A DNA stretch of 64,000 bases, taken from assembly GCF_036588685.1 (NCBI RefSeq), contig NC_086377.1, positions 12,896,001-12,960,000 of the forward strand. Reading direction: 5' to 3'. Under the pieces are notes generated by a model. It did not search any database, had not been told where the DNA came from, and was given only the letters and a program-made list of their open reading frames with translations. This document shows positions 712-51,347 of this stretch, in pieces. Position numbers and translations under genes: made by a program. The DNA comes from Mytilus trossulus (Eukaryota). The stretch's first letter is position 1. Every line of letters starts with the position of its first letter.

Positions 712-1014
712 AATATTTGTTGATATTAATCAGATAAGTTGGATAAGAAGTATCATTCTTATATTTGTAGATTTGGATTTATTTACCTATATTATATCTA
801 ACAAAGTAATACATCACATGACTTAGGTTGTCCCTTGGCACTTACATATGCCCTTTCATAAATATGTCAATAGTCAATACAAAACAGTAAAATATGTGTT
901 GATATTTATCAGATAAGTTGGATAAGGAGTATACTTTTTTATGTTTGTAGATTTGGATTGCTTTATCTATAGTATACTTCATATCTAAAAACAAAATCAT
1001 GTATCATATGACTC
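712..1014. repeat. Degenerate direct repeat, two copies of ~115-125 bp
   Basis: gttgatatt(a/t)atcagataagttggataag...tttgtagatttggatt...atgact at ~712-825 and ~891-1014. Confidence 0.8.
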
Positions 1015-1623
1015 TTAACATTTAAAAAGGACCTTAATAAATCTACAATCGATTTTTATCGTAGCTTTTGTTTACGACAAACTATCAATTGTTTGCAGTC
1101 TATTCATTTAATCGCATGTGATACGAGAAATGAAACATAGCAAACCTTATAAGAATGTATTACGAAATTATTCTGCCAACTCAATTTTTTTGATAATCAT
1201 TCAGGCAAAAAGTTATGTCCAGCATTGAAATATTATTTACGACATATCCGTCCCTCGGTAAATAAACAACCGTGTATACAATCATAAAAATAATTTAAAA
1301 AACCCAAATAACTATACATATTGACAGTTCAAGTTTTTTTAAATATTTCAATAAAACATTGTTTATAAAAAAAATATATAGTTAATTACCTTTTTTGTTT
1401 TGTTTTATTGGCCCTTCAAAATTGTAATATAAAGGGGATATAAGAAATATTTAAAAGTTAGAACCAATTGATCAATAACAAAAAAATTCAGCGAGAACGT
1501 TCTTAACTGTTGATGTGACCGATTAAGCTGTATTACATCAGCTAACGTTTGGTGAATTTACTGTCCTTGACACTTCTACTGGATAAGGTCATCGTTAATG
1601 TACATGCACATAAATATACTTAC

Positions 1624-1695
1624 AGGTTAACAAGCTGATTACAATCTTCAAATGTGTTCTCATTGATTTCAGAAATCTGATTACTGTTTAGGTCG
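1624..1695 (-). CDS. LRR-protein gene, duplicated 72-bp LRR exon (identical to 3314-3385)
   Basis: Identical exon and splice sites at offset 1690 inside the tandem duplication. Confidence 0.75.
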
Positions 1696-2271
1696 CTCAT
1701 ATGAAAAGAAAAATGTCCTTTATATTGCCGATAAATAACGAATTTCATTAAACATTAAAAAACAAAATCCTAAACCATGTTATACCACCTGATCAATTGA
1801 AAAGGCTAAAGGTTCTACAGGGTGTAATGTTTCGATGACTTTCCAAACCCTGTGATCACATGCAAGAACTCTTTTTCTTTGCGATTGTGTCTTGCTCCTA
1901 TTTTTATATTCATCATTTATGAAGTTGTCTATCGTTTATGATACCTTAATGCAACACTACCATATTGGTACGTTAATGGAATATAGTTTGAAGACAGATA
2001 CTTCTCTAATGCTACATAACAAAAAATCAAAGTATATAATTTAAAAGACTTGCTTAAATTAGAAATATAAGTATACCATTCCGGTATTCTATCGATAAAC
2101 CAGTCATATGTGCAGCTAGTCGTGATTATATTTATGAGAAGTAGGGCATCATACGATATGCTGCATTCATTATCCATGTTACGGCAGGCATTATGCGATA
2201 TACCGCAATTGCCACCTGAGCTTAACATTATAAACTGTGAGTATTTGTATTTACAGATTGTCAGATCATAT

Positions 2272-2542
2272 CAAGTCAGGAGCCTGTAATTCAGTGGTTG
2301 TCGTTTGTTAATGTGTTACATATTTGTTTTTGTTCATTTTGTTACCTAAATAAGGCCGTTGGTTTTCTCGTTTGAATTGTTTTACATGGTCTTATCGGGG
2401 CCTTTTATAGCTGACTATGCAGTATGGGCTTTGCTAATTGATGATGGCCGTACGGTTACCTATAGTTGTTAATGTTTGTGTAATTTTGGTCTTTTGTGGA
2501 TAGTTGTCTCATTGGAAATCATACCAAATTCTCTTTTTATAT
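2272..2542. mobile_element. Abundant short interspersed repeat (unclassified, family A: ...gttgtctcattggc(a)ctcataccacatctt)
   Basis: The same motif recurs at ~6935-7090, 10870-11000, 14460-14890, 15740-15860, 18560-18695, 28200-28610, 32360-32490, 49039-49243 and 50580-50625 in both orientations. This copy marks the right edge of the first duplication copy. Confidence 0.75.
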
Positions 2543-3313
2543 TTAAAGTAGTCTGCGTTTTATTTTGAAATATACGTGTTGTTTGTTTACTATCGTCGAA
2601 TCTTGTTTATTGACCTCAAGGTATGTTTACAATACAGTCGAACTATTGAAGCACGATCTTTTGCAGATACATTGCCATCCTTTTAATGCAAGTAAAATTA
2701 ATACAATGTATCCTTTCCATCAAACAAGAGTAAGTGAGTGACACCGAAATAGAGAATTCCGATCGCAATAATTTCGACTCATTTGTAATTTTGTCGAGAT
2801 CTTTATCTATAAGAGTGATCATACAGACAAACAAATAAGTCGTTGGGTTAAACATGCATGTGATATACAACAATATTTGTTGTTAAAATGTTTTAAATAA
2901 ATATGCATACATGATAAGGACGTTCGCTCCTATAATTTACATTAACAAGTTTTTTTTTAAAGTTTTGTTGTAAATTAAAAGTACAAAAATGACCTAATTT
3001 ATAAGCCAGCAGAATGGAAGGTCTGTGTCCGTTTTATGTAGATATAATTAATTGGAATGTGGTGGGAAGTGATTTATTTCTTGACGTTTCATATGTTAAA
3101 CCTTGTCACCTTTAATGTTACGTGTTGTGCTTTATCAGTTTGCTGTTTTAGCCCCTCAAATATGGGTTTATAACATTTTCGTTTAGAAGTGTTGGCCTTT
3201 AATATCACAAAAAGGGTCATTAACTATATAATGCATATTTGGTGAATTTACTGTCCTTGACACTTCTACTGGATAAGGTCATCGTTAATGTACATACACA
3301 TAAATATACTTAC

Positions 3314-3385
3314 AGGTTAACAAGCTGATTACAATCTTCAAATGTGTTCTCATTGATTTCAGAAATCTGATTACTGTTTAGGTCG
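3314..3385 (-). CDS. LRR-protein gene, 72-bp LRR exon
   Basis: 72 bp, phase 2-2, donor GTAAGT, acceptor ttttcatatgAG. Translates (L)DLNSNQISEINENTFEDCNQLVNL, a typical 24-aa LRR. Confidence 0.85.
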
Positions 3386-4174
3386 CTCATATGAAAAGAA
3401 AAATGTCCTTTATATTGCCGATAAATAACGAATTTCATTAAACATTAAAAAACAAAATCCTAAACCATGTTATACCACCTGATCAATTGAAAAGGCTAAA
3501 GGTTCTACAGGGTGTAATGTTTCGATGACTTTCCAAACCCTGTGATCACATGCAAGAACTCTTTTTCTTTGCGATTGTGTCTTGCTCCTATTTTTATATT
3601 CATCATTTATGAAGTTGTCTATCGTTTATGATACCTAAATGCAACACTACCATATTGGTACGTTAATGGAATATAGTTTGAAGACAGATACTTCTCTAAT
3701 GCTACATAACAAAAAATCAAAGTATATAATTTAAAAGACTTGCTTAAATTAGAAATATAAGTATACCATTCCGGTATTCTATCGATAAACCAGTCATATG
3801 TGCAGCTAGTCGGGATTATATTTATGAGAAGTAGGGCATCATACGATATGCTGCATTCATTATCCATGTTACGGCAGGCATTATGCGATATACCGCAATT
3901 GCCACCTGAGTTTAACATTATAAACTGTGAGTATTTGTATTTACAGATTGTCAGATCATATAAGACGCACACTAATGAAAATGGGTATTCGTTGAGGAAT
4001 AATAAACGGATATTTGTTATCATAAAGACAAAATAAAGTAAGTTGTACACAGTTGGTTGTTCTGGAGTCGCATATGTGGCAATATTTAAACATGTTTAAC
4101 GCTGATCAACGTGTGAACATACTAATGGTAACAAACTTATGATTTTTTTCGAAATGTATTTATGTATAATAAAC

Positions 4175-4295
4175 AAACTCATCATAGATACCAGGATTAC
4201 ATTTTGTATTTACGCCAAACGCGCGTTGAGTATACACAATATAGATCAGTGATGCTCGATTTCAAAAAAGTCAAAAAGGCCAAATGACAAAGTTG
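4175..4295 (-). mobile_element. Degenerate retrozyme fragment (decayed hammerhead)
   Basis: tacgccaaacgcgcgttgag...gatcagtgatgctc resembles the reverse complement of the hammerhead at 40655-40697. A related fragment lies at ~8953-9080. Confidence 0.55.
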
Positions 4296-4451
4296 AATCT
4301 CATCCCTACTATAAACTCAAATTATTATACGGAGTGTCACTAAACGAGTGACCTAAGGTAAAGGAACATTTGCTATTTACATATGTAGAATTAGTGTACC
4401 ATAATGTTTACTATTATACTAGGTTTGAAACAAAATTCTAAATTGACTTAC

Positions 4452-4523
4452 AGATGCTGCAACATTGGCAATGCTTTACAAAACTGAACAGCAATGTCTT
4501 TTATCTGGTTGCTATTTAGATTT
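4452..4523 (-). CDS. LRR-protein gene, 72-bp LRR exon
   Basis: Exactly 72 bp between acceptor ttttgtaaaAG and donor GTAAGT, phase 2-2. Translates (I)NLNSNQIKDIAVQFCKALPMLQHL, matching LxLxxNxI. Confidence 0.85.
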
Positions 4524-5179
4524 CTTTTACAAAATAAATAAACAAGTTCAGTAAAACAATTTAACTCGTCGACAAATCTGTACTTTTCGTGTTTCGTACA
4601 ACCAATCAAACTCAATATATATGTTAATTTTACTTCTGCTTGTATTCTAAAATATTGCAGAAAATCATTATAAAGTGTTCATGTTGTTGTTGATAATTTA
4701 ACAAAATGTATATTCGTACCATATTTCGTATAAAAATCTGTTTTACAGTTTGTGTTTGACATAAATGAGTTACATTTATAAGACAATATACAATTAAATA
4801 GGGATGACTAGATTTTTATTATAACTGTATCGATAAAAACACTTATCAACGACCTTTTATTGTAGATCTTATGTGTTCGCTGATTCGGCTAGATCAATGT
4901 ATTGTTTAGATTTGTCAATTTGTAAAGCCAATGACATTTGTGTTTACAATCTTAAACCTGCTTTCATTGATGAGCATTGTTAGTTTTTTTAATGTATGTG
5001 CCTACTTCCGATTCCATTGATAAATATATAAGAATGTTAACGAACAAAATTCAATATTTTCTATCTTTTCAATCCAAGTCGGCATTGGTTATGGTAGTGC
5101 TTGTATAAATAAGGGACCAAACAGACAGGGATTTGTAAATATGTTAAATTATACAAACATAATCAAATTGTATACCTAC

Positions 5180-5367
5180 ATGTAATACGTATCGTTAGAA
5201 AGCTCTGGTATCATCCCCAAAGATCTGGAACCGCAGTCAACTTCATTGCCAGATGAATGGATAGAACAGGAACACATCGACGGGCATGATGCATTTCCTA
5301 ATCCAGTACTTATTACAACAAGTAAGACGAAAAGTTGACTGTCAATTGTCATTCTATAATGAAACAT
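5180..5367 (-). CDS. LRR-protein gene, exon 1: signal peptide + LRR N-terminal cap (LRRNT)
   Basis: Hydrophobic leader LFVLLVVISTGLGNA followed by CPSMCSC...VDCGSRSLGMIPELSNDTYY (LRRNT pattern CPxxCxC...VxC.....L..IP). Phase-2 donor AT|GTAGGT at 5180/5179. Confidence 0.85.
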
Positions 5368-6619
5368 CGTTGAAAATACATAATTTCATTAATGAACATT
5401 CGTTAACAAAATATGTAATAAAGCTAGATTTACACGACCGCAAATTAAGATGATTTTCCTTTCCCTTAAAAAAAGGTTTAGATTATTAATATATAATTCG
5501 AACATATTTCAATTGGCATACGCTACTGGTTTGACTCGATGTATGCAACTGTTTATGTTATCACATCATCAGAAAAACATAAAGGAGAAGCAGATCATAC
5601 ACATTTTCGAACGATTTTGATTATCATAGCTAGTTCAAATGTTAGACACACATACAAAGACAACTATAACTAAGCCCCAATGACTTTCAAATAGATGATT
5701 CAAATAAAAGCACTTGTAGTATATGGCTTTCCAAATGTCAAAAATCAATTAAGGGAGAACAAATCCAGATTACAAACATGTATATTTAATACGTAAATCT
5801 ACATCAATTAATTGGTATAACAACTTCAAAACTCTGATGGATTAAGTCTAGCTATATGATGCAAGGTAATAGGTTAAATGTGTGAGAGAATGCGTATCTA
5901 CCCTAACCGAATTAATTTAGGCTTTGCTGTCTTATGTCCATGTAAATATGTGAATGTGCCCCAGCTAAAGTTCCAAACAACATCGTTCTTGTGTGTTATT
6001 CACATTAAATAAAATGCTTGATCAATAAATGAGATATGGACAATTCACTTTTAAACTCAATATATACCCCAACAACACTTAATAAAGAGGATATCTTGGA
6101 CACTCGTAGTTCTGTTCTATGATTCTTTGGAATACCAACCAAAGATGTAGGACTTGATCTCCAGTCACTATGATAAAAGTACCAAACTGAGGAATATCGC
6201 ATGTGTTATTCATTCGCTTGATTATGTCTGAAGTTTGATTTTGTCATTTAATTAGGGAAATCTCGTATTTAATTTTCCCAGGACTTCAATACTTTTTTTG
6301 TGATTTTATTATTTTATTCCTTTCCTACATACATGTACGTGTCCTTTCAATCATCCAAGAAACCTCTTTCTAAATTAATAACATACTTTTATCAGCAATC
6401 AAAACAAGGCTTTAAAGTTAATGTGAAAATATCTTTTCTAAATTGGCGTGAAGTAGATGTGGATACCTAAAAAAATCCAGAGTACATAACATTTGAGTAT
6501 GTTTCAGCTTGCAAAATAGTATGACAACATTTGATGTTTCTTCACTTTACACACTACTTCCTCATTCCAAACTAATAGAGTAATTGCACTCTGAATCAAA
6601 CCGAACTTCTCATAAAATG

Positions 6620-43957: not shown

Positions 43958-44291
43958 TTAACAAAGGAGAAGATAAACTGGAGATAAGTTATTTATACGA
44001 TTTCTTATATCTTCCAGTTAAAAAAAATGCATCAGCTTCTAAACATTTCCATCTTAAAACAGATGTTGGCCAGTATCATGAATATGAACCTTACTTCTTA
44101 TAAAATGTAAGGCAAACATATCAGCTGATACATGGTAATTTAAAAAACAATGAAAGTGCTTACATTTTCAAATGAATGAATTGCAAAACCAGACATGTCA
44201 GTACAACCAATTAAGAAAGAAAAGGTATATACCTGACAATTGACAATTACAGTATACACCAACTAGACGCCCTTGTGCAAGTAGACTAAGG

Positions 44292-44852
44292 CGAGCTAAA
44301 TTCATTTTAGCTTTAGCTTAATTCATTTAAGCATAAGCTGAATTCATTTTTGCATAAGCTGAAATCAATTTAGCATATGCTGAATTGTTTAGCTTATACA
44401 TAAATGTTGGCGCGGAATCAAGGTCATAAATATAAAAAAAAAGTGTATTTTGGCATATACTTAATGAATTTAGCTTATGCTAAAATGAATTAGGCTTATG
44501 CTAAAATGATTTAAAGCTTATGCTAAAATGAATTAAGCTTATGCTAAAATGAATTAAGCTTATGCTAAAATGAATTTAGCTTATGCTAAAATGAATTTAG
44601 CTTATGCTAAAATGAATTTAGCTTATGCTAAAATGAATTTAGCTTATGCTAAAATGAATTCAGCTTATTCTTAATTAATTATATTATCCAATCAAAATCT
44701 CGCTTTCTTAACCACTTTTATAGGACTTTATACTTTTCTCTGGTATAAAGTAATAACCACTTTTCTCAAAGTAAATATTTTTATAAATGTTTTTCTTAAT
44801 GTAAATACATATATAAATAGGGGGTACTATGGCCGTCTGCCATCCCGCTAAG
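44292..44852 (+). repeat. Element with 20-21-bp quasi-palindromic minisatellite (agcttatgctaaaatgaattt)n
   Basis: About 10 tandem units at 44465-44668, and oppositely oriented units at 44292-44395 around ggcgcggaatcaaggtcataaa. Inverted homolog at 60760-61335. Confidence 0.9.
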
Positions 44853-45386
44853 TCCATCTCTGCTACAATTAAGCTGATTTTTTTATAAAAATTTAGGTCT
44901 TGCATGTTGGAAAATTTATTTTAAATTCTTGACACGAGTTTGCTGTTTAAACAAAATTCTATGTGTAATTGTGTATACATTGTATTCGATCTATTAACCC
45001 TTAACGGTGCTATAGATACACAATGTGTACATTCGTTGCCGATTGCATAAATGAAATTTTCACTACTGTGTGGGGTGAAAAGGTCGTCGAATACAATACT
45101 GTTTTTTTATATGGTCGGGTTGTTGTCTCTTTGACACATTCCCCATTTCCATTCTCAATTATAATAGAATTTAATTAAATGAAAATTAAATTAATTTATT
45201 GAATTAACATATACATGTATTGAGACTCGACAAATCGAGTCGTCCTTTACTCTTATTATGCTAATTTGAGCATGTGACAGCCGAGTAGTCAAAGTCCGTG
45301 CAATTTAACGGTCTCTTTTACCTTGAAAACCGAACGGAGAGGACGTTAAGAAATTAAGAGAAATATTCTACATACACTATCAAGAA

Positions 45387-46507
45387 ATGCCTAGAATTGG
45401 TCGACGAAGAAATGGGAATGGGCGCGCACGAGTGCCCGTTGTTGAAGCGCAACCACCAGAGAGACGACGCGGAAGGAGAAACCGTGCAGTTGCTGCACCA
45501 AGAAATCAAGATGTGGGGGCAATTGTTGGTGAAATACAAGTACAAGCACCTCTTCCTCTACAAATCCAGGCTCCTTTGCCAATTGAAAGACAACCTGCCT
45601 TGCAAGGTCCAGCACCAGCAATGAACGTACAAGCGCCATTTGGGCAAGTTGAAATACCAGCTCCTGTGCCAATGCCTAATCAAAATGGTGAGATAAATAA
45701 TGATCCTATGCTTATACTTAATCAGTCAGAATGTGATGTTTACGTATCTCAAAATTTGAAAGAAAAAATATGGAATAGAGAATTTATAGATTTGTCATTA
45801 CTTCTTTATCAAAATTTTATTAGTCAAAGTGACAGACCTCAGAATGTTATAAGTTATGTAATGCAGCTGGTTCACTTGTAATTACATCAAACAAAAACAG
45901 CAAAGTTAAATCTATTCAAAACATTGAGTCATGGACTGATGCATTTATAAATTATATGAAAATATTTATTCAACGTTTTCCAAATTTAGCTAGTGAATTG
46001 ACCACTTATATGTCAATCGTTAGAGGTACACAAGTGTCTTTTGAGAAGATTTATTGTTATGACCAGCAATTTCGATTAAGAATGGCAAATAATCCTACAA
46101 GATCTTGGTCTTCCATTGATGGCATTTTATGGTACACCGTCATAGCTAATGGGGAACCGGAGGGTAATACAATTCAACAGACAAGTGTAGGTAATCGACC
46201 ATGCTATGATTATAATTTCAAGGGAGTTTGTAATCGTCAAAATTGTTTTTATACCCATTTATGTATGAAATGCGGAATGGCCCACCCTTTCGCTGGCTGT
46301 CAACAAGTAAATAGCTACCAGGCATATGCTCGTTCTCAAAATGCAGCCCGAGGCACATATCAAAATACAACGAGAGTTGCTAGAAATTTTGCACATAGAA
46401 GTCAAACACATTTTCAAAGAGGAGCAAATTCGAATCAAGGATTTAGACCTCGAGGAAGCAGATTCCCTGCCCTTCGAATGGCCGCACCACAAACATTTAA
46501 CAATTAA
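45387..46507 (+). pseudogene. Gag-like ORF1 (frameshift near 45858)
   Basis: Arg/Pro-rich N-terminus, KEKIWNREFIDLSLLL, IESWTDAFINY, YDQQFR and a Cys/His finger CYDYNFKGVCNRQNCFYTHLCMKCGMAHP, typical of DIRS/Ngaro ORF1. Confidence 0.85.
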
Positions 46508-46525
46508 ATTTTATATTTTTCAGAA

Positions 46526-48170
46526 TCTTTAATTAATCCGTTGGACATATGGTGTCTTGGCTTTACTCCGATCAATATCACAGAATTAAATAAAATTCTT
46601 TTCAATTACCCAAATCAACATGATGCAATGATATTATGCAAGGGATTTTCTGAAGGTTTTAGGTTAAATTATGTTGGACCCCGATGTAGGATTGAATCAA
46701 AAAATTTACATTCAGTCATCCAAAATCCTGGGGTGGCATGGGAAAAAGTCATGAGTGAAGTAAAAAATGGTTGCATAGCTGGTCCTTTTTTGACTAGACC
46801 TATATCTAATCTAAGGTGTTCGCCTATAGGTGTAATTCCTAAGAAAACGGGTGGATTTAGATTGATTACGCACTTATCTTTTCCGCCAAATTTGAGTGTA
46901 AACGACTTTATTGATGAAAAATTTACTACAGTAAAGTATTCGTCTTTTGACAATGCTATTGATATGATTAAAAGATTGGGTTCAAATGTTGAAATTGGAA
47001 AAAAGGACATTAAATCCGCCTTCAGATTGTTAAACATTTATCCAGGGGACTTCGATCTATTAGGATTTAAGCTCAATGAATATTATTTCATAGATAAATC
47101 ATTGCCTATGGGGTACTCAGAATCAAATTGCTTATTCGAAAAATTTTCAACTTTCATTTAATGGGCTGTCATGAATGAATCCAATTCAGCTAATCTTGAT
47201 CATTATTTGGATGAATTTTTATTTGCTGGTAAAAGTAATACTGAGGATTGTAAAAATCTTTTGAATAGTTTTGATAGAGTTTGTTGTCGTCTTGGAGTCC
47301 CAATTGCTCATGAAAAAAACAGAAGGCCCAACAACAAAACTTAGTTATCTAGGTTTGCTTATAGACACAGAAAAAATGCTAATGCAAATTCCGGAGGACA
47401 AAGTATTGGAGTTAAAGTCAAAAATTAAATGGGTATTGGGTAGGAAAAAGATAACTTTAAGGGACCTACAATCTTTGTGTGGGTCATTAGCTTTTTGTGC
47501 AAAAGCTCTACCTGCAGGCAGAGCATTTAGCAGACGAATTTATTTGGCAAGTAGTCATGCAAAGAAACCACATTATTATGTCAGAATTACAGAAGGCATG
47601 TATCAAGACTTATTGGTATGGGAATTGTTTTTAGACAAATTTAACGGTATTAGTTACATGCTCGACATTGATTGGACTTCAAATTCAGTTTTACAACTAT
47701 TTACTGACAGCGCTGGTGGTTCAACAAAAGGGTGTGGCTGCTATTTCCTTTTTTTTTTCCAAGGTAAATGGGCTTTTCTTAAATGGCCTGTAGAATGGTC
47801 TGGTACTGAAGTTCTCAGGGATATATCAGATTTAGAAATGATACCTATTGCACTATCTGTTTACTTGTGGGATAACCTTTTTCAAAAAAAGAAAATTTTA
47901 TTTAATTCGGATAATAATGCCGTGGTTGAAATTTTAAATAAGAAGACGTCAAAATCTATACGAATTATGAACCTTGTTAGACACATAGTATATTGGTCAT
48001 TATTAGGCAATTTTCACATTAAGGCACAGTTCATTCCTGGTTATACAAATATAATTGCAGATTGTATTTCTCGTAAAAAATTTCAGAAATTCAAAAGTCT
48101 GGCTCTAACAGCAGATACACATCCAGCTACAATTCCGGAGGAATTTTGGAACATTTTAGACCAGAAATAG
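46526..48170 (+). pseudogene. Reverse transcriptase / RNase H (pol)
   Basis: SPIGVIPKK..GFRLITHLS, KKDIKSAFR, LPMG and HYLDEF (YLDD altered); RNase H LFTDSAG, LEMIPI, SDN and IADCISR. Premature TAA at 47159-47161 and a poly-A frameshift at ~47315. Confidence 0.92.
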
Positions 48171-48910
48171 CTAAGTTATTGGACGCATCGAATTCTCAGA
48201 ATACATGGAAAACGTATAACAATGGACTGACTTCATTTGTTTCATTTAGATTAAAAGAAGGTTTAGGAAATACATGGCCGCCCAGTATTTCGCATTTAGT
48301 CAATTATGTTGCTTATTTATCAAAATTAGGATATGCCCCTGCAACGGTTAAGGTGTACTTGTCAGGTTTAAGCTATTATTTACGAATAAATGAGCTCACT
48401 GATTTGACTTCATCGTTCATTATACAAAAAATGTTGAAAGAAATGGACAAACTATATGGCGTAGTGGATAGTCGCAAACCTATAACTTTAGAAATATTAG
48501 CTCGATTAATAAACTCGTTGCAATTTGTCTGTTCTTCAGTATATGAATGTACGTTATTTAGATCCATGTTTTCATTAGCATTTTTTTAACAGTTGAACGA
48601 TTTTATCAAGTAGATATTTGCCCGGTGAGATTGTTATTAAACTTTGTTTCAATCAGACACCAAAACAATGGACCACTTTTTTTGTCATTTTAACAAAACC
48701 GGTGTAACACGATATCAGTTTTCTAGTGTACTATGCAAGACCATGAAATTTATTGATTGTAATCCAAATGAGTACAACACGCATTCATTTCGAATAGGAG
48801 CAGCTACACATTTTGCTATGAATTGTCATACTGATGAAGAAATTATGACTTTAGGTCGTTGGAAATCTGCATCCTTTAAACGTTACATAAGAATTGAGCT
48901 AACTAAATAA
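48146..48910 (+). pseudogene. Tyrosine recombinase (internally deleted)
   Basis: N-terminal NTWKTY...APATVKVYLSGLSY and RKPIT; C-terminal HSFRIGAAT...LGRWKS..FKRYIR. The first catalytic Arg box after SLAFF is missing. Confidence 0.9.
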
Positions 48911-48925
48911 CTTATAATTTCAGCT

Positions 48926-49742
48926 TGTCTTAGTAATGAAATATGGATTAGTGGTTCTTCAATAATATGCAGTGCTCGTGATCACTCGGAGAACAGACCT
49001 TCAGGTAGTAATTTAGGTCTTTTGAAAAATAATAATTGTTTTTTATATAGATTAGACCGTTGGTTTTCCCGTTTGAATGGTTTTACACTAGTAATTTTGG
49101 GGCCCTTTATAGCTTGTTGTTCGGTGTGAGCCAAGGCTCCGTGTTGAAGGCCGTACTTTAACCTATAATGGTTTAATTTTTAAATTGTTATTTGGATGGA
49201 GAGTTGTCTCATTGGCACTCACACCACATCTTCCTATATCTATTTTGCGATGGGCAGGCGAATCTGGTATGAAATGGGACGATGTTGTTGGCACATTTAA
49301 CAGCATCATTAATTTATGCAACAAAATTCCACATGCGTTGATATTGCATTGTGGTGGGAATGACATAGGAAATGTACCATGTGGTGCTCTGCTATATCAC
49401 ATTAAATTCACAATAGCAATTCTGTCTCGCATGCTCCCAAATTGTTCTCTTATATGGTCAAGCATTCTTCCAAGGCGTTCGTGGCGTTACTCAAGTGATG
49501 ACCATGCCATGGAAGTTACAAGAAAGAGAATAAATAGGGGAGTGAGATCTTATATACTCAAACATGGAGGATACGTTATCAAATATCCAGATTTTGATGA
49601 TCGTCATCCAGCGCTATATTCTGACGATGGAGTACATCTATCATTTATTGGAAATGATATTTTCTTGAATCAAATTCAGTCAGCACTAGAAACATTCATA
49701 AAGTATCCACATTGTGTTATATTTCCTCACGATCACCACTAA
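48926..49742 (+). pseudogene. SGNH/GDSL hydrolase ORF of the element, split by a repeat insertion (49039-49243)
   Basis: Block I IWISGSSI, block II WAGESGM, block III LHCGGND and block V DGVHLS. Confidence 0.88.
49039..49243. mobile_element. Family-A interspersed repeat inserted in the hydrolase ORF
   Basis: Matches the repeat at 10870-11000 (ccaaggctccgtgttg..ggccgtac..taacctata...tctcattggcactca.accacatcttccta). Confidence 0.85.
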
Positions 49743-51347
49743 TTTAAAATAAACACAGTTCATACTGATATTGGATGAAAATACATGTATTTTATGAAAT
49801 TTGGTTGTTATATAAATGTTGAATTCGCAATATCTTTTATTATTTTGATTGTTTAAATGTTGTTGAAAAGTTGATTGTAGAATTGGAGATAACCGAATTG
49901 TCATGGGTAAATTTTGTGGCGGATTATCATTCTGTACTAAAGTCCGAATGATAATTTTGGCGTAATTTACTTCATTTTATGCAGACTATGGATAGCCCAG
50001 CTGCTAATTCTGAAATATTGCTGAATGGACCGCCCTTCAGTACACCAGCTTTGGATCGCCCAGCTGTGATACAATGATTAGTTCAATCGTCATCAACATT
50101 TTATTGATTGACAAATATTTTGGTTGTGTACTGTTGTTGTAACAGTTGTTGTTGTTTTATGAATTTTGATTAAATGTTGCCATGACAATTCAATATCCAA
50201 ACCAAATCAGTGTTTGTTATTTGTTGTACTGAAATACAAATCAAGGCATCAATGGCGTCTGTTCGTCAATTCTGATAATTGGTTAATTTACAACAAGTGA
50301 TATTTTGGTCAAATGAGATATTGAATAATGTTTACATTATAATAGATGACAAGTTGAGATTGGACCAAATGATGTTTTTCAATCTTGGTCAATGATTTAG
50401 CACTATCGGAAAGACAGGTTAATTTTTATTTGCAGCACAATCCCATTACAATTTTGTAGTTTTCGAGTAGTTCTGTTTTTGATCATTCTTAACTTTTGCC
50501 AATCCTTTTAACTTGTCACAGGAGGGTTCATCCTTGATGAAAGCACTTAGTTGAAACCGCCACATTTACGTAAATATATAAAAAGAAGATGTGGTATGAT
50601 TGCCAATGAGACAACTCTCCATAACAGTATAAAAGTTTACGACGACGGACGACGGCGTCGTCGGACGCAAAGTGTAGAGAAAAAGCTCACTTGGCCCTGT
50701 GGGCCAGGTGAGCTAATAATCATATCATTGAAAGTCTTCCTATAATCAGATCTTTCACGATGTTCGACAAACGGTCTTCAAAAAGCGTTACGTGATCATT
50801 CACAATACGACATATCAATTGTGTGTAAATATTTATTTTTTACAAAGTTTATGATAATGATTACACAAAATAACTTTGATGACTAGTTGGTTCATTCAAA
50901 TGAAAGGACTGGTATTGGAGAAAGGTAGTTTTGTCATTCGAATTGTAATAAAAAAAACAAATATTTGTTAACATTTTTAATGTCATTGAAATGTCGAGGA
51001 GCAATCTGCCTTTTATAGTTTTGTACTTTTAAACCTAGATTTTCTCACATACTGTTCATAATGATGAACCAATTTGACAGGTTGTTTTATTTTGTTGTAA
51101 CTTTGTTAATGTAATTAATCAAATTAGATTAGTTATTGACCCTGGATATATCTACTCGTTAAGATTTGAATTTACGATCCGATACTGGATTTTTCACGAT
51201 CCGATCGCAATACTTGACCACCGATGGTCATCGATAGGTGTTTTTTCAATTTCATTTCTCTCAAATAAACCGAATGAAACCCATAGTATGTGTGCCAAGT
51301 AGACAAGTCGCCATCAAAGTCACAATTTGTAAAAGTAAACCATCATT

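Follow-up and report, generated by a model that had tools for sequence, protein, structure and literature searches.

How are the genes of a retrotransposon translated when they lie behind its first open reading frame (ORF) and carry no start codon of their own? The question is raised by a locus in the window analysed here, a stretch of 64,000 nucleotides (nts) of Mytilus trossulus DNA (NCBI RefSeq assembly GCF_036588685.1, contig NC_086377.1, positions 12,896,001 to 12,960,000 of the forward strand), in which positions 45161 to about 50150 of the + strand are one decayed copy of a Ngaro-type tyrosine-recombinase (YR) retrotransposon belonging to a young Mytilus family. Its genes follow one another in the order gag, pol (reverse transcriptase (RT) and an RNase H-like part), YR and an SGNH/GDSL-type hydrolase. 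A first-pass annotation of this stretch had proposed that a single splice donor within gag is joined in phase to three acceptors, one ahead of each downstream gene, whereby Pol, YR and hydrolase would all begin with the first 100 residues of Gag. The donor and the hydrolase acceptor (48923/48924) are really joined in RNA, in frame, a conclusion held with high confidence. For the family as a whole, expression of the downstream genes in a retrovirus-like manner, by alternative splicing of the full-length RNA, appears somewhat more probable than any outcome without it.

The family comprises at least 30 copies, 92-98% identical, in the 1.30-Gb genome searched. The window copy being broken, the scheme was judged on better-preserved copies, which were compared individually; L009, in which all four ORFs are open, is the reference copy, and L010 is a full-length copy on the + strand. 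The coding layout, in window positions, is as follows.

45387..46507, + strand: gag ORF, 373 amino acids (aa) where open; frameshifted in the window copy after 45858.
45387..45687, + strand: leader exon, Arg/Pro-rich, comprising the first 100 gag codons and the opening base of codon 101; joined to the hydrolase in RefSeq models.
46524..48170, + strand: pol (RT and RNase H-like), 549 codons from stop to stop in L009; broken in the window.
48087..48910, + strand: YR ORF, shifted to the -1 frame with respect to pol, whose end it overlaps (48077-48170).
48924..49742, + strand: SGNH/GDSL-type hydrolase ORF, 209 codons where open; interrupted in the window.

Membership in Ngaro is indicated by all three enzymes. 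The pol product has 466 relatives at E<=1e-10, most of them with a precomputed PF00078 assignment, and its RNase H part gives a weak RVT_3 match. A YR takes the place of a DDE integrase, with Phage_integrase and a SAM-like N-terminal domain near or at the Pfam cut-offs and 320 YR relatives. The hydrolase behind it matches Lipase_GDSL_2 below the cut-off, with readable GSS, GGND and DGVH blocks. No domains beyond RT, RNase H-like, YR and hydrolase, such as a methyltransferase, were found in the ORFs of the element. Gag has 3867 relatives at E<=0.001 and matched no Pfam family; these relatives align only from about residue 100 on, which makes the leader the variable part of the protein and places the donor at the border between a fast-evolving leader and a conserved core.

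In L009, gag and pol share one frame with a single TAA between them, as do YR and hydrolase, an arrangement on which the first-pass annotation is silent. The first methionine (Met) is reached at codon 41 of pol, codon 116 of YR and codon 53 of the hydrolase. Met41 of pol sits behind a DIW.LG.TPI...YP block conserved in more than 100 relatives, Met116 of YR inside the N-terminal SAM-like domain, and Met53 of the hydrolase behind the catalytic GSS block. Because the first Mets lie inside or behind conserved sequence, pol, YR and hydrolase need a start from elsewhere, and the earlier statement that none of the three has an ATG where its homology begins is borne out by these positions. Contig-derived proteins that begin with M do not establish start codons of their own; in many of them the M is probably a TTG called as a start, MEPF in the short calls being ILEPF in the longer ones.

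A start could be supplied by splicing at the following sites. Those named by the first-pass annotation are D1, A1, A3 and the YR acceptor at 48164, and the letters, coordinates and phases it gave were all correct on the window.

45688..45693 (cut after 45687), + strand: donor D1, AATG/GTGAGA, phase 1 after gag codon 100, 301 nts from the ATG at 45387.
46191..46196 (cut 46190/46191), + strand: second donor D2, GTAG/GTAATC, phase 1; kept in 19 of 20 copies.
46518..46523 (cut after 46523), + strand: pol acceptor A1, tttttCAG/AA, a TTTCAG, phase 1, 16 nts after the gag TAA (46505-46507).
48081..48086 (cut after 48086), + strand: proposed YR acceptor A2', a TTTCAG, phase 1, 10 nts after the YR-opening TAA (48074-48076).
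48159..48164 (cut after 48164), + strand: YR acceptor as first annotated, gaccAG/AA, phase 1, with a TAG 5 nts upstream; without support.
48918..48923 (cut after 48923), + strand: hydrolase acceptor A3, aatttCAG/CT, a TTTCAG, phase 1, 13 nts after the YR TAA (48908-48910).

D1 ranks as the second-best donor-like GT among 281 in the element and as the best in the coding region (on a rough matrix), and its GT is kept in 21 of 21 aligned copies. When it was asked what the pol acceptor and the hydrolase acceptor have in common, the hexamer TTTCAG emerged. In the roughly 5 kb of the element, the + strand contains it at three places and no more, equally in the window, L009 and L010. All three occurrences lie 10-16 nts after the stop that opens pol, YR or hydrolase, and all are in phase 1. 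Rough odds put the chance of all three placements below 1e-5, and that of the third given the first two at about 0.005; judged on the letters of the element, the pattern exceeds chance. The splice sites are kept in nearly all of the 21 copies, which at 92-98% identity says little alone.

The joining of D1 to the hydrolase acceptor is documented first by protein models. When the leader alone was used in a word search and the members of the resulting clusters were listed, at least nine RefSeq proteins emerged that read ...PMPNQN/ACLSNEIWIIGSS (beginning ACLSNEIW) across the joint. Seven are M. trossulus loci (XP_063410046, XP_063426545, XP_063420774, XP_063417812, XP_063406085, XP_063431107 and XP_063435516) and two belong to M. 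edulis (XP_071170813 and XP_071129598). At the L010 locus, XP_063410046 maps as two exons separated by 3.4 kb, with 100% identity. Leader and hydrolase exons stand side by side in genomic DNA at none of the 128 places scored. Hence the joined form has no DNA template in the assembly, and the RNA must be spliced.

The second line of evidence comes from mapping onto L010:690-6190, for which three Logan contig sets (X1, X5 and X13) and one raw RNA run (X24) were used. That X1, X5 and X13 are RNA is a guess, their totals of 51-226 million letters fitting transcriptomes better than a 1.3-Gb genome, and contigs show the presence of junctions, not their absence. Two GT..AG joints begin exactly at D1 (L010 1809/1810, equivalent to window 45687/45688). 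One, in an X13 contig, leads from D1 to the hydrolase acceptor (L010 1808 to 5178, cut +1, equivalent to window 48923); the depth in X13 is 11.9 on the contig with the leader-hydrolase joint versus 1-2.6 on the unspliced sequence just behind D1. The other, in X1, leads from D1 to a cryptic acceptor, tttAG/AT, at L010 2197 (L010:2190-2200 being window 46068-46078) and removes 388 nts, with a depth of 49 spliced versus 51 unspliced, and 107 upstream of D1. The product of this cryptic joint is the leader followed by D and a stop, and its AG exists only in a subfamily with AGA in place of CGA, the window copy having CG. The hydrolase fusion that had been predicted is thus upheld by the X13 contig, by nine RefSeq models and by the lack of joined DNA.

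The picture of one donor needs to be widened. D1 is used, as foreseen, and the element additionally has a second donor within gag, a small 5' exon with its intron, and the cryptic acceptor just described. Isoforms X1 and X2 of LOC134693232 read ...QQTSV/ACLSNE, which is D2 (46190/46191) joined to the hydrolase acceptor; this junction is found in RefSeq gene models only, with no contig in X1, X5 or X13. Some RefSeq models begin with MRRD/RIGRRR in place of MPRIGRRR, revealing a small 5' exon (L010:1203-1219) within a segment upstream of gag. Its donor, cag/GTAGGT, is the top-scoring donor of the element, its acceptor, cctAG/AATTGG, lies just inside gag (L010 1510/1511), and its ATG is restricted to one subfamily (L009-L011 and L015-L021).

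The pol and YR junctions are less firmly placed. The predicted pol junction, ...PMPNRN/ESLINPLDIW, is present exactly in one M. galloprovincialis model, VDI28363.1, which makes the earlier claim plausible, although the junction is absent from the contig sets and the RefSeq pol model has no leader; use of the pol acceptor (46523/46524) by D1 may be put at slightly better than even. For YR, a splice to 48087 would give the leader followed by E-IQKSGSNSRY...GILEHFRPEIAKLL. The acceptor A2' (48086/48087) is used by three M. galloprovincialis models (VDI62701, P0163 and VDI69343), from three different donors in pol. In addition, the YR exon of XP_076073692 and XP_071146702, RefSeq leader-YR models of another Mytilus Ngaro family, begins at residue 58, and their residue 59 aligns to codons 2-3 of the YR ORF of the window's family, beside 48086 and not 48164. 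Use of 48086 as the YR acceptor is accordingly predicted with a confidence just short of even. Peptide conservation in the YR frame upstream of 48164 was tried as an arbiter between the two YR acceptors and discarded, because the same DNA encodes the conserved C-terminus of pol (..IP.EFW.LL..). Joined DNA copies for D1 with the pol acceptor or with A2' were not evident among the genome matches to the family.

RefSeq models with basic leaders (57-105 aa) ahead of Ngaro enzymes exist in other bivalve families. Leader-YR models are found in Argopecten irradians at two loci (XP_069104712 among the models; 399 aa versus 306 aa for the bare ORF on contigs), in M. edulis (XP_071146702) and in M. galloprovincialis (XP_076075986), and a leader-pol model in Pecten maximus (XP_033745490). 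Compared by BLASTP, the leaders of different families gave only compositional matches (E 0.06-0.25, in a tiny database). Among the best 150 of the 3867 gag relatives, no further leader fusions were found. The genome also holds many other Ngaro families, 39-61% identical in pol and with open pol, YR and hydrolase frames; several of their elements exist in identical copies and are hence very young. The hydrolase and YR frames of these other families open just a few codons ahead of the point where homology starts. Intact families of this kind were placed at C4:72905920-72907524, C2:93194905-93196512, C3:39652666-39654258, C4:16546712-16548316, C2:84358502-84360106, C13:7353806-7355176 and C2:89840987-89842591.

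The scheme that we favour would work as follows. Unspliced RNA would encode Gag and serve as the template for new copies, and for this reason the introns would stay in the genome. In spliced RNAs, the phase-1 donor after gag codon 100 would be joined to TTTCAG acceptors 10-16 nts behind the stops that open the downstream ORFs, fusing the Gag AUG and a 100-residue Arg/Pro-rich leader in frame to proteins without a start codon of their own. As in retroviruses, a 5' splice site inside the first ORF and downstream of its AUG is used in RNA, namely D1. An in-frame junction is found for the hydrolase; for pol it stands in one non-RefSeq model, and for YR the acceptor A2' is used, with other donors, in three non-RefSeq models. 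One third of this leader-fusion scheme (hydrolase) is observed and two thirds (pol, and YR at 48086) would follow the same plan; overall, it is given a little over an even chance. What the shared leader might do, be it nuclear import, RNA binding or co-assembly, is speculation.

Several points weigh against this scheme. The RefSeq pol model XP_063426544 begins at Met41 and has no leader, and no RefSeq leader-pol or leader-YR model was found for the window's Ngaro family. No joints to the pol acceptor or to either YR acceptor occur in X1, X5 or X13, whose run type is a guess ("RNA?"), and X24, with only 11 reads, showed no junction. Ab initio prediction, in which ORFs are simply chained wherever a GT and an AG happen to be in frame, may account for the M. 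galloprovincialis models. A Met of their own just ahead of the DIW motif seems to be present in many pol relatives. The leaders of different families are without detectable similarity, and the foreign leaders are not established as Gag N-termini. Finally, the pairs gag-pol and YR-hydrolase are each read in a shared frame interrupted by just one TAA, which readthrough requires and splicing does not, and a run of six A (A6, 48075-48080) marks the point where the pol/YR overlap begins, the expected position of a -1 frameshift site. The length of this run varies between copies from 5 to 8 A, which may be homopolymer noise or mark a slippage site.

A mixed strategy is a possible but less probable alternative. 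Only the hydrolase, the accessory last gene, would then come from a spliced subgenomic RNA. Pol would be made from unspliced RNA through readthrough of the gag TAA, from a non-AUG start at the TTG before DIW or from Met41, and YR would be produced fused to Pol, the A6 run serving as the site either of a -1 shift or of slippage during transcription. Such a strategy would agree with the shared frame of gag and pol, with the position of the A6 run exactly at the start of the -1 overlap, with hydrolase junctions alone being seen in the contigs and RefSeq models of the window's family, and with the leaderless RefSeq pol model; overlapping ORFs are, moreover, the rule in the DIRS order (PMC9210276). 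However, no RNA structure was found behind the gag stop, the YR stop or the A-run (z = -1.1, +1.2 and +0.2 versus shuffles). A TAA followed by A is a tight stop and a poor context for readthrough, and the contexts found here are TAA-A and TAA-C. Nor does T AAA AAA, read in the pol frame, match the canonical heptamer X XXY YYZ. A mixed strategy also leaves unexplained the phase-1 TTTCAG sites 16 and 10 nts behind the pol- and YR-opening stops, and the RefSeq leader-YR and leader-pol models of related families speak against it. The hydrolase shares its frame with YR ahead of it and is nevertheless demonstrably reached by splicing; a shared frame therefore does not argue for readthrough here.

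The junctions could alternatively be noise, produced by the host spliceosome on cryptic sites or by artefacts of assembly and annotation on multi-mapping reads, without a role in expression. In keeping with this, the cryptic acceptor present in one subfamily, with its dead-end product, takes half of the X1 depth, the contig joints have only 29-30 letters on their short side, and Gnomon models of repeats can be unreliable. This explanation is improbable. The same junction was obtained independently from contigs and from numerous RefSeq loci of two species, and the fusion keeps the phase exactly and rescues an ORF that offers no Met until after its catalytic GSS block. In X13, moreover, spliced sequence outweighs unspliced sequence downstream of the donor, and noise offers no account of the three-TTTCAG pattern.

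The scheme exactly as first written, with the YR acceptor at 48164/48165, and with it any use of 48164, is very improbable: a CAG/AA in phase 1 does stand there directly before the first strongly conserved YR residues (E-I..LL.AS), but it is not a TTTCAG site, the competing TAG 5 nts upstream would give the leader followed by DQK and a stop, it was found in use in none of the models and contigs, RefSeq places the start of the YR exon in relatives some 25-30 residues ahead of it, and the TTTCAG 78 nts upstream fits better.

Splicing may also have left its trace in the genomic copies. Upstream of gag, the window copy differs from most copies at one point.

45384..45385, + strand: junction at which a 5' segment of about 560-577 bp is absent from the window copy; in most copies the segment immediately precedes the gag ATG.

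In all 17 long copies the borders of this segment (L010:924-1500) read caag/ATAAGTAT (beginning caag/ATAAGT) and tttgtttatAC/aaATG, the cut being ambiguous by 1 nt. The window copy lacks the segment, as do L002, L003 and L004 (at two other genomic sites), with identical borders in all four. These four short copies do not form one clade in a tree built without the columns of the segment (log-likelihood difference 33.7, AU p = 0.001); hence the segment was lost more than once, or copies recombined. U2-type AT-AC introns were reportedly described by Wu & Krainer (1997). With ATAAGT at its 5' end, AC at its 3' end and exon-like flanks, the 5' segment looks like a candidate intron of that type, removed before reverse transcription. 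No RNA joint without the segment was seen in the mapping of X1, X5, X13 and X24, the contigs running through it, and the only support, an indirect one, comes from the short copies not forming one clade. Spliced LINE-1 RNA that is copied back leaves intron-less genomic copies, the SpIREs (PMC5860796), and the window copy and the three others resemble these in the sharp, identical borders of what they lack, but the borders here are AT..AC and not GT..AG.

On one strand, C4:14888639-14917381 holds three copies of the family within 30 kb. Two of the three, L002 and L003, are 99% alike, which suggests that the group arose by segmental duplication on the spot and not by independent insertions.

The window copy itself is decayed throughout. 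Compared with L009, a 1-nt deletion after 45858 shifts the gag frame, a nonsense codon at 47159-47161 and an extra nt at 47313 both break pol, and a 148-bp deletion at 48585 and an extra nt at 48677 both fall in YR. The remaining features of the copy are the following.

45161..45359, + strand: repeat A1, the 5' split direct repeat, 97% identical to L010:696-897; the element starts at about 45161.
49040..49243, + strand: insertion of about 200 bp resembling a miniature inverted-repeat transposable element or a short interspersed element, private to the window copy, interrupting the hydrolase ORF; absent from all other copies, with a 3-nt overlap at the joint.
49743..50147, + strand: 3' untranslated part, homologous to L010 until that locus ends; repeat B1 starts at about 49958.

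An intron within the hydrolase ORF (GT at 49005, AG at 49257, in phase) was considered and ruled out, the apparent intron being the private insertion. A 38-nt inverted partial match (95%) to this insertion stands at 50585-50622, 1.35 kb downstream, and is probably a further copy of this small repeat. In L004, a 75-bp deletion ending at the hydrolase acceptor was likewise set aside; it shows microhomology (CTT), lacks a GT and is thus a deletion of the ordinary kind. In Ngaro and DIRS-order elements as described, the split direct repeats are arranged A1...B1-A2-B2 and neighbouring ORFs abut or overlap (Goodwin & Poulter 2004 and Poulter & Butler 2015, as cited in the accessible text of PMC9210276 and PMC7192593). 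Contigs of three runs give the order B-A-B (L010 joints 897 to 6007 and 6190 to 696), which fits Ngaro, the genomic loci compared ending before A2. A second A copy was not found in the window, whose element holds A once and so is without the usual B1-A2-B2 end; beyond about 50150 (window 50150-50900) its 3' end has been either cut short or rearranged. Some hundreds of bases ahead of the element, window 44288-44703 holds an array of a 21-bp unit (AGCTTATGCTAAAATGAATTT), in two oppositely oriented blocks whose 93-nt arms are 88% complementary.

How elements of the DIRS order, Ngaro included, translate ORFs that abut or overlap and often lack a start is left open in the searchable literature, where papers only note the overlap. 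One leg of an answer by splicing is established here with public data, and the other two are reduced to exact junctions, 45687 to 46524 and 45687 to 48087. If the scheme is true, it explains the translation of the start-codon-less genes of the element, and four proteins would share an Arg-rich N-terminal module that might draw them to the same RNA or particle, or into the nucleus. More tentatively, and with less than an even chance, bivalve Ngaro elements, and perhaps Ngaro elements at large, may be "complex" retroelements in which a Gag-leader exon is spliced onto Pol, YR and hydrolase, with a rare AT-AC intron in the 5' untranslated region as a further layer; such a scheme would account for the translation of abutting, start-codon-less ORFs in the DIRS order. 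A practical consequence concerns automatic annotation, which renders Ngaro elements as multi-isoform models of an "uncharacterized protein" or "xerD homolog" in mussel and scallop, although these are transposon products.

The layout of the mussel element is that of described Ngaro elements, which have gag-like, RT/RNase H and YR ORFs and in some cases an SGNH hydrolase ORF behind YR (PMC9210276 and PMC7192593, in their accessible text). The difference lies in how the ORFs are expressed, which those accessible passages leave open, with no natural splicing described in them. The first-pass annotation had taken as established that DIRS-1 of Dictyostelium uses splicing to bypass ORF1, a precedent that finds no support, all splicing in the DIRS-1 paper concerning an artificial marker intron; the searchable literature yielded no account of DIRS-1 or Ngaro RNA being spliced naturally. 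Its interpretation was right in kind and is proven for one of the three acceptors; the YR acceptor position and this precedent were wrong.

In foamy virus Pol expression and in the gag subgenomic RNAs of copia and Ty1/Copia elements, splicing, and not Gag-Pol fusion, sets the protein ratio. Unlike the mussel element, these have no shared N-terminal leader on several enzymes, and they belong to a different element class. In rice tungro bacilliform virus, splicing of the pregenomic RNA fuses a short ORF of the 5' leader in frame to the distal ORF IV, which has no usable start, to give P4 (Futterer et al. 1994, as summarised in PMC5902531). Going by that account, this plant pararetrovirus differs from the mussel element in having a single acceptor and in donating a tiny upstream ORF and not a capsid-like N-terminus.

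In avian sarcoma/leukosis virus, the donor follows gag codon 6 and is joined to the acceptors of env and src, and the unspliced RNA is both gag mRNA and genome. The mussel element resembles this virus in having one donor inside gag, alternative downstream acceptors and a gag AUG reused in frame (for Env in the virus). It differs in what is donated, the virus giving six gag codons and the mussel element 100 codons that form a distinct Arg/Pro-rich module. Furthermore, the virus makes its Pol by frameshifting, whereas the mussel element is a YR retrotransposon with split direct repeats and no env. If the whole scheme is true, a retrovirus-like strategy has evolved in a retroelement lineage that carries a recombinase instead of an integrase.

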